Part shown: piece by piece, positions 24,201-30,200 of the stretch
Position numbering within the stretch: the stretch's first letter is position 1
How the letters are laid out: every line of letters begins with the position of its first letter
DNA from: Octopus sinensis
Lineage: Eukaryota
Assembly (NCBI RefSeq): GCF_006345805.1
Contig: NW_021832014.1
Span: forward strand, 1-62,745
Direction of reading: 5' to 3'
DNA: 62,745 nt
Notes under the pieces: model-generated
Database searches by the model: none
Told to the model about the DNA's origin: nothing
Seen by the model: the letters and a program-made list of their open reading frames with translations, nothing else
Position numbers and translations under genes: made by a program

Positions 24201-27200
24201 GATGATGATGATGATGATGATGAGGATGATGATGATGATGATGATGATGATGAGGATGATGATGATGAGGAGGATGATGAGGAGGATGATGATGAGGAGG
24301 ATGATGATGATGATGATGATGATGATGATGATGATAAGGATGATGATGATGAGGAGGATGATGATGAGGAGGATGATGAGGAGGATGATGATGAGGAGGA
24401 TGATGAGGAGGATGATGATGAGGAGGATGATGATGAGGATGATGATGAGGATGATGATGATGATGATGATGATGATGATGATGAGGATGATGATGATGAT
24501 GATGATGATGATGAGGATGATGATGATGAGGAGGATGATGAGGAGGAGGATGATGAGGAGGATGATGATGAGGAGGATGGTGATGAGGAGGATGAGAATG
24601 ATGATGAGGAGGAGGATGAGGATGAGGATGATGAGGAGGAGGAGGAGGAGGAGGTTGATGAGAATGAGGATGAGGAGGATGAGAATGATGATGGTGATGA
24701 TGATGATGATGATGATGATGATGAGGAGGAGGATGATGATGAGAGGATGATGATGAGGAGGATGAGAATGATGATGAGGAGGATGAGAATGATGATGAGG
24801 AGGATGAGAATGATGATGATGATGAGGAGGAGGAGGAGGAGGAGGAGGAGGAGGAGGTTGATGAGAATGATGATGGTGATGATGATGATGATGACATATA
24901 TGTGTGTGTGTGCATGTATTTGTATATACATATATGAGTGTGTATATTAATATTAATATATATATATATATTAATATACACATATTTGAACACACGCATA
25001 TGCACACACATGCGCAGCGCACAAAGAGGGATGTTTCCGTTGCTGACCTTTGCACCGGGTTCCGTTTTTCGTTGCAGGCAAATCACTGGTTTGGGTTGGC
25101 ATCCTTGGCATGGTAGTGTTCTATCTATACGGCATTATTGGTTTTGCTATGATGAGAAATATGTTCGACCCAAATGAATATCTTTATTGTGCTTCCCTGT
25201 GGCAGTGTACAGTCACAGTAGTTCGCTATGGTCTTATCGGGGACCTATTTGAGGTGAGTGACCACAACCATCCTGCCATACACACACACACACACAACTG
25301 CACACACACACACATATACACATACACATATACACATATACACATATACATATACACACACGCACACAACTGCACACACACACACATATACATATACACA
25401 CATACACATATACACATATACACATATACATATACACACACACACACAACTGCACACACACACACATATACATATGCACACATACACATATACACATATA
25501 CACATATACATATACACACACGCACACAACTGCACACACACACACATATACATATGCACACATACACATATACACATATACACATATACATATACACACA
25601 TGCACACAACTGCACACACACCACATATACTATGCACACATACACATATCACATATACACATATACATATACACACATGCACACAACTGCACACACACAC
25701 CACATATACATATACACACATACACATATACACATATCACATATACATATACACACATGCACAAACTGCACACACACACACATATACATATGCACACATA
25801 CACATATACACATATACACATATACATATACACACATGCACACAACTGCACACACCACATTACATATACACACATACACATATACACATATACACATATA
25901 CATATACACACATATCACACAACTGCACACCACACACATATACATATACACACATACACATATACACATATACACATATACATATACACACATGCACACA
26001 ACTGCACACACACACACATATACATATACACACATACACATATACACATATACACATATACATATACACACATGCACACAACTGCACACACACACACATA
26101 TACATATACACACATACACATATACACATATACACATATACATATACACACACACTCACAACTGCATACACACACACACACACATACACATACACACATA
26201 CGCATGCAAACAAATACATGTATACATGCACGCACAGTCACACACACACATACATATACACATATATGCATACACATATACACACATACACATGCACACA
26301 AACACACATATACATATGCACACACATACATGCACTCACATATTCACATACACACACATATACACATGTCCAGACATCCACACACACACATGTGCACACA
26401 CATTCATGCATACACATGCACACACTCACTCCTATTAACACAAACACACATGCACACACTCACACATACACACATTTATGTGTATTTATATATATATATA
26501 TACATATACATATCTTTATGCCCACACCCCATATATACATACATATATATATATATATATATATACATACATATATATAGTATATATATATATGCATATA
26601 TATATATATATATATATATATATATAATATATATATATATATATATATATATACATACCTATACATACATATATATATATATACATATATATACATATAT
26701 GCATATATATATATATATACATATATAATATATATACATACATTATATATATGCATATATATATATGGGAGACTTTTCTATAGTAGAAGAAAGCTAAGAT
26801 TTTTGGCTGCTATTTTCTAAAAGTTTGTGTGTGGTAAAGTAAATTATTATACTGAACCCTAATTATATAACGTAATACTGAACACTACTTGGTAAAATTA
26901 AATTAATAATTAATTAATTTTACCCTTTATTATTGACAATATATATATATGTATATATAATATATAATATATATATATATATATATGTATATATATATAT
27001 ATATATGTATATATATATATAGATATATATATATATATATATTTTATGTATGTATATATACATAACATATATACAAATATATATATATGTATATATTATA
27101 TATATTATATATATAATATATATATTATATATTATATATTATATATACATATATATAATATGTATTATCATATATATACATATATATATATGTATATATA

Positions 27201-30200
27201 CATACATACATATATATATATACCTACATAAATACCTATATATATATATATATATATATATACATACATATATATATATAGTATATATATGCATGCATAT
27301 ACATAATGTATGTAAATATCGTTTAATGCATTTTGTCCAGAATAATGCTATCTTCTTTCTTCTTTTCTCTTTTCTCTTTTCTTTCTTCCCCGTCCCCACC
27401 CCCTTCTTCTGTCTCCACCCAAACCCTTCCCATCATTCCTAGTCGATCAAAGCTCATAAAGACGAGGCAACATTCGCTAAATTCGGGTTGGTGGTTCTTT
27501 TCCACGTATCATTTTTCATCTTCATCACGACAATTGGCCTTAACATAATCTTTGGTATCATCGTTGATACCTTCTCGGAACTCCGAGATCTCAAGGTACG
27601 TAAAAAATTTCCTATTTTGTTTCCTTATACGCAAACACGTACACACATACATATATATTTGATTAATGAGAGAGATGGAAGATGAAAGATTCATCACTAC
27701 AATTGTTTCGACAAATCTAGCATTGATCTTTCTCAGGTGGGAATTAATGAAAGAGATGGAAGATGAAAGATTCATCACTACAATTGTTTCGACAAATCTA
27801 GCATCCATCTTTCTCAGGTGGAAATTAATGAGAGAGATGGAAGATGAAAGATTCATCACTACAATTGTTTCGACAAATCTAGCATCGATCTTTCTCAGGT
27901 GGGAATTAATGAGAGAGATGGAAGATGAAGGGTTCATCACTACAATTGTTTCGACAAATCTAGCATTGATCTTTCTCAGGTGGCAATTAATGAGAGAGAT
28001 GGAAGATGAAAGATTCATCACTACAATTGTTTCAACAAATCTAGCATCGATCTTTCTCAGGTGGCAATTAATGAGAGAGATGGAAGATGAAAGATTCATC
28101 ACTACAATTGTTTCAACAAATCTAGCATCGATCTTTCTCAGGTGGGAATTAATGAGAGAGATGGAAGATGAAAGATTCATCACTACAATTGTTTTGACAA
28201 ATCTAGCATCGATCTTTCTCAGGTGGTATACTTGACAACTGGTTTAGGAGCATCCGTCAATGTAGATGTGTCTCTTCAGGAGATTACAATACATATCCCA
28301 TTAGAATAACGTCTGTTCCACAAGTTTTCTTTTTGGTATGTGTATAGAAAAACAGCAACTTAAGGGAAACAGCTTCTTTATTATACAAGATGAATAACAA
28401 ATACCAGATGCAAAAAGAAACATATACAATACAATGGAAAAAGTATTAAAAATATGTTTTGTAGCGATCAATAAACATTTTCTTATCTTCCAGTTTCCAT
28501 CTCACTCATTAATCAAATACTCAACAAACACTTAGAAATTGAACATACTTTGCTGGTAAGCTACCAAGTGTACACCATATGGTTTATAATCTAATATAAA
28601 TATATATACATGTATGTATACATACATATATATATTATATAAAATCCATTCTGTCTGCGTGTGTGTCTTCTAGGATCTCGGGCATCCTCCATCCGATTGC
28701 GCTCAAATTTGATATGTAGATACTGATGGTATCAGGGCGTGTATAAGTCTTGAAAAAATTACAAAAATCGATTCCAGGTGGGAATGCGATCGATAAAGCT
28801 GTGGGAACGTGCATTTGTAAATCGTTTTCTTAGAATAAATAAAAGTCTATCTTTATTCTTTATTTCTTCTTTGCTGTCTCAAATTTAGGTTAATCAGTGT
28901 TTCTCAAAGAAGGGGTCTATGGGACGGTCGGACAAGTTGTTTTGAGAAAATTTGGTTTAAATGTTTGACAACTCAGCACCGTCCATTAGACAGGGGGCGT
29001 TTTGCTCGTATGTATATATATATATATTAGAAGAAATGAGGTACTCAGAGAATCGGATGGTTTATATTTACAGATATTTATTTGATTATTACATTTTTTA
29101 TATATATCATATAACTTAGATCATGTATTAGCGCTTTCTCCCATTCTAGTGCAGTATATATATATGTGTGTGTGTGTGTGTGTGTGTATGTATATACACA
29201 TACATATATAAATATGGAGGGGGGTAGTGGGGGGGGATAACAGCAGAAGCAACAATAGCAGTAATAGTGGAGATTGTAGTGGTGGTGGTGGTGGTGGTAG
29301 TGGTGGTTTTTGTAGCAGTATTAACAGTAGCAGCAGCAGAGGAGATGGATATGACCAAACCAACAGGATCATCTGGGGGTTGAGGAAGAGATGCATCAGT
29401 TGGTCAATGTATTTTTTGTCCAGAATATATATGTTTGTCTGTTCCAACATGTTTCCTACATTAAATCAATATTGCCATGTTCCCTTCTCATATATTTACA
29501 GTGGACAGCCGAATCCGATATGAGAGACACGTGTTTTATATGCAGCAGGAACAGTTACGATTTTGAACATCATGGAAAGGTGAGTCTCGGAGTTTATAGT
29601 CTTTATACACCCATGTACAGCACTTGTATATACATAGATACATGCAGATACAAACCAACATACATACATACATACATATATACTCTTTTACTCTTTTACT
29701 CTTTTACTTGTTTCAGTCATTTGACTGTGGCCATGCTGGAGCACCGCCTTTAGTCGAGCAAATTGACCCCAGGACTTATTCTTTGTAAGCCCAGTACTTA
29801 TTCTATCGGTCTCTTTTTGCCGAACTGCTAAGTGATGGGGACATAAACACACCAGCATCGGTTGTCAAGCAATACTACGGGGACAAACACAGACTCACAA
29901 ACACACATGCACACATATATATATATACATATATACAACGGGCTTCTTTCAGATTTCCGTCTAACAAATCCACTCACAAGGCTTTGGTCGGCCCAGGGCT
30001 ATAGCAGAAGACACTTGCCCAATGTGCCACGCAGTGGGACTGAACCCGGAACCATGTGGTTGGTAAGCAAGCTACTTACCACACAGCCACACCTGTGCCT
30101 GTATATATATATATATATAAATTGAAGGGTTACTTATAATCCAGACTGTTACCTCGTTAGCACTTCAGGTAAAACCTGGTTAGTATAGTATTCAGTTAGC

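Follow-up and report, generated by a model that had tools for sequence, protein, structure and literature searches.

An octopus IP3R-B gene whose predicted pore lacks the glycine-triplet filter

We analysed a 62,745-nucleotide stretch of the Octopus sinensis genome (contig NW_021832014.1 of assembly GCF_006345805.1, forward strand; hereafter the window). Its first 35 kb hold the 3' portion of a gene of the IP3R/RyR superfamily of intracellular channels, running in 18 exons on the + strand (71-34892) from the RIH_assoc domain to the stop codon. From its sequence we assign this gene to IP3R-B, the third branch of the superfamily. We searched the translated protein for the GGGxGD/E motif after the pore helix and did not find it; GLIGDLFE occupies the site.

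The octopus gene and its family

The exons (Table 1) were located by tblastn and a splice-site search, using as a guide Lottia Lgig_163525, whose sequence is in the supplement of the leech transcriptome paper (PMC7992859). Spliced together, they form a single open frame of 997 amino acids closed by TAA, and every intron has AG/GT boundaries. Identity to the Lottia protein is ~60-90% per exon, and by this sequence comparison the window gene is its orthologue. Pfam recognised RIH_assoc (68.5 bits, cut-off 28.5, E=5e-19) followed by a six-transmembrane Ion_trans domain (27.6 bits, cut-off 25), the arrangement that defines the superfamily. The exon count in the window agrees with the 'exon 13-14' numbering of the original prediction, which had been made from the letters of this DNA.

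Most of the models matched in a protein search with the spliced C-terminus were short and fragmentary; they came from snails, limpets, bivalves, annelids and flatworms. The closest database entries were XP_014790409.1 and XP_052833111.1 from Octopus bimaculoides, with few substitutions in the exons held in common. The RefSeq model XP_052833111.1 (P0217 in our set) has no equivalents of window exons 11, 12 and 15 and of part of exons 6-7, and it thereby lacks the exon-12-type segment and the zinc-finger Cys pair. Because the skipped exons have canonical splice sites in the window and are conserved in Lottia, the public O. bimaculoides annotation looks wrong.

Three families, IP3RA, IP3RB and RyR, were already present in the ancestor of bilaterians (PMC7992859, citing Alzayady et al. 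2015). According to the papers that cite it, the name IP3R-B was introduced by Alzayady et al. 2015 (Mol Biol Evol 32:2236). Members occur in many invertebrates and among the relatives of animals, but not in vertebrates, Drosophila or C. elegans, which have lost the family; it has been described as 'understudied', with its physiology called unknown (PMC7992859). Two leech members, ip3rb1 and ip3rb2, were described by Heath-Heckman et al. 2021 (PMC7992859).

We placed the window protein in a neighbour-joining tree of the channel domain (136 sequences, 281 trimmed columns, 100 bootstraps). The labelled references were those in the FASTA file behind the tree of PMC7992859 (Lottia, Capitella, Helobdella, Saccoglossus, insects, a nematode and vertebrates), a published set in which Lottia, Capitella and Helobdella each have sequences in all three families (A, B and RyR). 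To these we added 112 database proteins, drawn from the best 150 of 4944 matches in an exhaustive HMMER search and from the first protein search. The window protein grouped with Lgig_163525, a Candidula protein, P0081 and Octopus P0083 at 100% bootstrap. Support was 94% for the clade with an 'RYGLIGD-type' motif, 91% for all bilaterian IP3RB including both Saccoglossus genes, and 98% for the split between a B-like half and the remaining tree, which includes the IP3R-A and RyR clades. IP3R-A and RyR were each recovered at 100%, and the window protein fell outside both. A separate clade sharing a GLIGD-type motif, which the original prediction had proposed to look for, was thus found, and the protein is not nested within canonical ITPR.

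That prediction had also called the gene a member of a third, uncharacterised class. The distinction from ITPR and RyR is upheld by the tree, and the claim to a new class is not, as the family has carried the name IP3R-B since 2015. The position apart from IP3R-A and RyR, the non-canonical filter, and databases that call members 'ITPR type 1/2/3' or 'uncharacterized' are all what a previously unrecognised class of intracellular channel would produce. However, the name IP3R-B/IP3RB exists, members from Lottia, Capitella, Helobdella and Saccoglossus stand in a published tree, and an O. bimaculoides orthologue is already present in RefSeq; we regard an unrecognised class as very improbable. A literature search turned up no paper on a GGG-less animal IP3R-like channel, and the pore description alone might be new, depending on how Alzayady et al. 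2015 treated the filter. The contribution here lies in describing the pore and in modelling the octopus gene; the class itself was known.

Comparison with known channels was made family by family. The window protein clusters with every IP3RB-labelled sequence, and nothing distinguishes it from its molluscan orthologues. It shares with the family a GGG-less filter, a short S5-P loop, MCDGQ in RIH_assoc and the zinc-finger context WTAE.DM..CFICSR. Within IP3R-B it sits in a lophotrochozoan subclade marked by RYGLIGD and an S6 His, whereas Saccoglossus and Capsaspora keep the S6 Arg/Asp pair. With IP3R-A (ITPR1-3, Drosophila Itpr and C. elegans itr-1) it has in common the architecture, the pore helix, the S6 gate IFG.I.DTF, the C2H2 zinc finger, EHNMW, the C-terminal coiled coil and the second Ca2+-sensor Glu, and its best sequence match in the PDB is ITPR2 (145 bits). 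Unlike IP3R-A, it has no GGGxGD, carries Val/His in place of Arg/Asp in S6 and Asp in place of the first Ca2+-sensor Glu, and has an S5-P luminal loop of 7 residues against ~50-100. None of the three marks of IP3R-A membership (a place in the ITPR clade, GLR[NS]GGG[VI]GD and S6 R...YD) was found. Several IP3-contact residues of the beta domain that IP3R-A has are also not conserved in the IP3R-B relatives.

RyR1-3 resemble the window protein in the pore fold, in the C-terminal motifs Y.F....GFE.H and DFFP, and in a luminal loop shorter than that of IP3R-A. They differ in their GVRAGGGIGDE filter, and the PDB score is lower (105 bits). Length is a further difference: the relatives available at full length (Octopus P0217, 2256 amino acids; Tubulanus, 2674; Capsaspora, 2564) compare with ~5000 in RyR. 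All three contain Ins145_P3_rec, MIR, RIH and RIH_assoc, Ion_trans is found in Tubulanus and Capsaspora, and SPRY, which was also looked for, had no match in any of the three. Choanoflagellate and Corallochytrium B-like channels (Salpingoeca rosetta PTSG_02461 and others) lie in the same half of the tree and have the loop length of the window protein, but they keep the S6 Arg/Asp pair and, in most cases, GLLSGGGLGE. These channels would represent the state before the filter was replaced.

The pore filter and the S6 pair

Direct translation places GLIGD right after the pore helix within exon 13, as originally predicted, followed by LFE and a GTGAGT donor at 25254; exon 14 opens after a TCCTAG acceptor. 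Since the pore helix and GLIGD share one exon, splice variants cannot restore RxGGG. The predicted exchange of the S6 Arg and Asp for Val (S6 position -4) and His is also present in the translation. The gate, the CFIC Cys pair, the zinc-finger His residues (31171-31173 and 31186-31188) and EHNMW are intact; the C2H2 finger has the spacing seen in ITPR1, and S6 retains the superfamily's gate and hinge motif, I/L-F/Q-G-x-I-I/V-D-T/A-F. The strings against which these features had been judged, ...ARVIYDLLFF for ITPR1 and GVRAGGGIGDE...YRVVFDITFF for RyR1, agree with the human ITPR1 and mouse RyR1 sequences.

We compared the orthologous pore exons with two independent assemblies, L001 and L002. 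The proportion of differing nonsynonymous sites (pN) was 0.038 against L001 and 0.12 against L002, and that of synonymous sites (pS) was 0.94 and 0.78, respectively. As synonymous sites are saturated at these values (pS 0.78-0.94), we give pN and pS in place of a numerical ratio of substitution rates (dN/dS). Rare replacements beside saturated synonymous sites point to strong purifying selection on the pore exons. Together with the intact frame, they indicate that the gene is almost certainly functional, in line with the 'constrained, functional channel' that had been proposed.

These data also bear on whether the locus could be a pseudogene, or a canonical ITPR orthologue bearing a lesion of the assembly, of the annotation or of this one lineage. 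Assemblers can be confused by microsatellite blocks such as the 2.2 kb of intron 13, and the sister species has a defective RefSeq model, as described above. However, GLIGD lies within a single exon, and the contiguous motif and the exon 13|14 junction are repeated in the independent assembly L001. GLIGD-type motifs also recur in molluscs, annelids, a nemertean and a flatworm. Combined with the intact frame, the canonical splice sites, the selection on the pore exons and a tree position outside IP3R-A, this means that a lesion or pseudogene can practically be discounted.

GGG is absent from the filter of all 34 sequences in the bilaterian IP3R-B clade, which argues against a canonical pore in this family and not against its membership of the superfamily. 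In the window's subclade, which comprises gastropods, octopus, leech, Capitella, Tubulanus and Macrostomum, the filter follows the pattern G-[LV]-[IV]-G-D-x-x-[ED]. Variants include GLVGD and GLVGQ in leech, GLTAE in Capitella, GLIGDLLD in the nemertean Tubulanus and GLIGDLFD in the flatworm Macrostomum. Other lophotrochozoan paralogues have GLSDGMYN, GLIDGMYN or GLIISLFE, and the two Saccoglossus filters read GLIDGLQE and GLLESFHE. An acidic residue at filter-loop position 4/5 and/or 8 is found in nearly all of the 34. Outside Bilateria, Corallochytrium and most choanoflagellate relatives retain GLLSGGGLGE or a similar filter, and GGG is missing from Capsaspora CAOG_04510 (P0094; GLENGLASVG) and Hartaetosiga balthica P0108 (GLRDGVIFPGGE). 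The tree neighbours of these two sequences bear GGG, and there may have been more than a single loss of the filter.

In one Capitella gene model, Ctel_203606, the S5/pore-helix exon is present in two forms, one after the other (...HRGAAIGV and ...HRGLIDGMYN), which could be mutually exclusive exons or a model error. A hidden or duplicated pore exon of this kind was ruled out for the octopus window, where tblastn gave only one match to exon 13.

The original prediction had left two explanations for the altered filter: a 5-residue deletion offset by a 5-residue longer loop, or a wholesale substitution. It had rested on an equal pore-to-S6 distance, and we find 33 residues from the conserved Gly to the S6 Phe-Phe in both the window protein and ITPR1. 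Across the tree, members of the GGG-less clade have spans of 32-33 residues, and the mode in GGG-bearing sequences is 33. Since it is constant with or without GGG, the filter appears to have been overwritten in place, with no net deletion, and wholesale substitution is the better fit. The deletion-plus-insertion model corresponds to the pairwise HMMER alignment, in which IGD meets VGD through a 5-residue gap. It is disfavoured by the constant loop length and by the MAFFT alignment of all 136 sequences, in which the canonical filter Asp is matched, through a 2-residue gap, to the Glu of LFE and not to the Asp of GLIGD. Residue-level homology inside the filter loop is, on these alignments, ambiguous.

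The S6 Arg/Asp pair, which we take to be R4913 and D4917 of RyR1 (in the numbering of the original prediction), is present in 50 of the 67 sequences of the other half of the tree, where the IP3R-A and RyR clades lie together with further relatives. The pair also occurs in the choanoflagellate B-like channels, Capsaspora B and both Saccoglossus B genes. In two lophotrochozoan paralogue groups the pair has become Lys/Asp or hydrophobic/Asp, and hydrophobic/His is restricted to the lophotrochozoan GLIGD clade. The retention of the pair in Saccoglossus B and the relatives, and its change in lophotrochozoan groups only, indicate that the filter was replaced first and the S6 pair later.

Luminal pH sensing through the S6 His had been suggested, and it would make this residue a defining element of channel function. 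The His is indeed fixed in the window's orthogroup, which includes molluscs, both leech paralogues, one Capitella gene and a Macrostomum gene. However, within the same 94%-supported clade the site is also Gln (Ctel_215467, P0006), Lys (Tubulanus P0086), Ser (P0091) or Glu (P0082), and the change to His accompanies the loss of the Arg partner, resembling the replacement of a structural pair. The S6 His therefore looks like an acceptable polar replacement after loss of the Arg and not like a conserved sensor, and we consider a pH-sensing role quite improbable.

Calcium-sensor residues, predicted fold and putative function

The Ca2+-sensor residues of human IP3R1 are E1938, E2002 and T2614 (PMC9522344). 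E1938 corresponds to Asp in the window protein (MCDGQN) and in every IP3R-B aligned, and the equivalent of E2002 is kept as Glu (NEF). The E1938D mutant of human IP3R1 retains Ca2+ regulation with a lower open probability (PMC9522344). After the second sensor Glu, IP3R-B has [AS]GN or ASN in place of QGPC. As read from these alignments, the E1938D and QGPC replacements may be an IP3R-B signature that affects Ca2+ sensitivity. In the cytosolic vestibule of RyR1, D4938 and D4945 are critical for permeation, and their equivalents are retained in the window protein (VDTF and ELRD). The AlphaFold2 monomer (mean predicted local distance difference test, pLDDT, 71.6) has a pore helix, a loop of 10-15 residues and a long S6, and its best Foldseek matches are IP3R3, IP3R1 and RyR1.

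The locus holds an intact IP3R-B gene under constraint, in which the gating parts are canonical and the filter lacks GGG. With moderate confidence, we interpret its product as a gated tetrameric cation channel of the endoplasmic reticulum (ER) with altered permeation. The protein would assemble as a tetramer in the ER membrane and would open and close as an IP3R does, given its S6 hydrophobic gate, glycine hinge, zinc finger, vestibule acids and sensor pair. The narrowest luminal part of the pore would be lined by the Asp and/or Glu side chains of GLIGDLFE and not by a ring of glycine backbone. A constriction lined by side chains should differ from that of IP3R-A and RyR in conductance and in selectivity between Ca2+ and monovalent ions, which makes altered selectivity or conductance of octopus IP3R-B plausible.

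Several points weigh against this interpretation. Mutations in GGGxGD strongly reduce or abolish conduction in both IP3R and RyR, and a wholesale replacement of the motif might close the pore. The tree is a neighbour-joining tree of a single domain, not a maximum-likelihood one, and the N-terminal two-thirds of the gene lie beyond the window on its 5' side. The AlphaFold2 model is of a monomer, with moderate confidence in the filter loop (pLDDT ~64), and we used its secondary structure and fold matches and not its pore radius. Our search found no permeation or ligand data for an animal IP3R-B, and the sole functional report that it found is second-hand. Capsaspora IP3R-B reportedly released no Ca2+ in response to IP3 and formed no association with mammalian IP3Rs. 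A secondary source states that IP3R-B 'could not bind IP3', a property reported for the Capsaspora protein. Absence of IP3 binding and of IP3-evoked release would fit a non-conducting protein as well. Among the IP3-contact residues of the relatives, equivalents of R265, K508 and R511 are kept and those of T266, T267 and R269 are not, a mixed result.

These reports, and the complete loss of GGG from all bilaterian IP3R-B examined, would be accommodated by a member with a dead pore, which would sense a ligand or Ca2+, serve as a scaffold or be a modulatory subunit. Such a protein would have no obvious need for the gate, the glycine hinge, both vestibule acids, the filter-loop acid and the loop length, yet these have been kept for >500 million years, and replacements in the pore exons are few (pN 0.04-0.12). 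Given that gate, vestibule charges, loop length and loop acidity are all conserved, we rate a non-conducting role below that of a gated channel and think it unlikely.

A broader form of the gated-channel interpretation is possible, if doubtful. Bilaterian IP3R-B as a whole might be a distinct kind of ER channel, gated through the Ca2+ sensor and S6 and not by IP3, with a side-chain filter and permeation unlike that of IP3R-A and RyR. If so, its profile could be that of a weakly selective monovalent or counter-ion pathway or of a low-conductance Ca2+ leak, used in specialised cells such as leech touch neurons. Leech ip3rb2 is strongly enriched in touch neurons, with in situ signal, and reaches 647-763 transcripts per million in the higher samples of its supplementary-table row (PMC7992859).

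GGGxGD is the textbook basis of IP3R and RyR pores, and structural and biophysical work has been built on vertebrate IP3R-A and on RyR. On the sequences examined, IP3R-B is a whole sister family that has done without the GGG filter for more than half a billion years. It is strongly constrained in molluscs, annelids, nemerteans, flatworms and hemichordates, with the gate, the zinc finger and the Ca2+ sensor kept. The family thus offers a natural, selected alternative to loss-of-function mutants for asking what the glycine filter does. For the neurobiology of cephalopods, snails and leeches, it represents an extra, physiologically uncharacterised store channel.

Repeats and surroundings of the gene

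Several introns of the gene are rich in tandem repeats. Intron 13 contains a CA/TA array with an 80-bp period (25301-26392, ~14 copies) and an (AT)n tract (26531-27290); the orthologous intron in L001 measures only 229 bp (L001 229-457). An (ATG) microsatellite of ~240 units (24175-24894) lies immediately upstream of exon 13, and an (ATAC) microsatellite of ~142 units lies in intron 7 (11895-12467). Spurious open frames run through two further arrays: an 81-bp tandem repeat in intron 14 (27662-28226; 7.0 copies, 96% identity), where the frame is long, and a 60-bp tandem repeat in intron 4 (6283-7187; 13-15 copies, with a 180-bp period also called).

We looked for a neighbouring gene between 35 and 62.7 kb and saw only repeats and a retroelement fragment. 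The fragment is an open frame on the + strand (38907-39236) that ends in ...MWNLKTKTIPVFIGALGMIVKGADCYLTQIPGNPKMAEIQKIVLMGTAHILCKILSM and looks like the C-terminal end of a retroelement reading frame. Many copies of a short interspersed element (SINE), recognisable in translation, are scattered in both orientations through the introns and downstream of the gene; the element is probably an octopus SINE.

Table 1 Exons of the octopus IP3R-B gene and other features of the window
Feature	Position	Strand	Content	Evidence
Exon 1 in window	71..208	+	RIH_assoc start; MCDGQN 179-196, Asp 185-187	tblastn, splice model, Pfam, alignment
Exon 2	3065..3214	+	RIH_assoc remainder; NEF 3200-3208	tblastn, splice model, alignment
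Exon 3	4710..4811	+		tblastn, splice model (AG/GT)
Exon 4	6193..6276	+		tblastn, splice model
Exon 5	7218..7397	+		tblastn, splice model
Exon 6	8434..8539	+		Junction has the lowest score and is the least supported of the model
Exon 7	9419..9534	+		tblastn, splice model
Exon 8	13913..14082	+	Segment preceding first transmembrane helix
Exon 9	14892..15014	+	First transmembrane helix
Exon 10	15879..16040	+	Transmembrane helix
Exon 11	20472..20580	+	Left out of O. bimaculoides RefSeq model
Exon 12	22759..22882	+	Ends ...TQNG; left out of O. bimaculoides RefSeq model
Exon 13	25078..25253	+	S5; short luminal loop DPNEYLY; pore helix 25197-25238; GLIGD 25230-25244; LFE 25245-25253
Intron 13	25254..27442	+	~2.2 kb, nearly all repeat arrays
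Exon 14	27443..27595	+	Post-filter loop, S6; Val 27491-27493; His 27503-27505; gate 27542-27574; ELRD 27578-27589
Exon 15	29502..29579	+	Zinc-finger Cys pair CFIC 29532-29543; left out of RefSeq model
Exon 16	31159..31278	+	Zinc-finger His pair; EHNMW 31183-31197
Exon 17	32837..32974	+	C-terminal domain
Exon 18	34128..34892	+	Coiled coil; long Ser/Pro/Arg-rich tail; last codon ends 34889; TAA 34890-34892
Short interspersed element, examples	419-541, 5182-5445, 16076-16231, 29847-30122, 41778-42050, 50854-51291	both		Recognisable in translation

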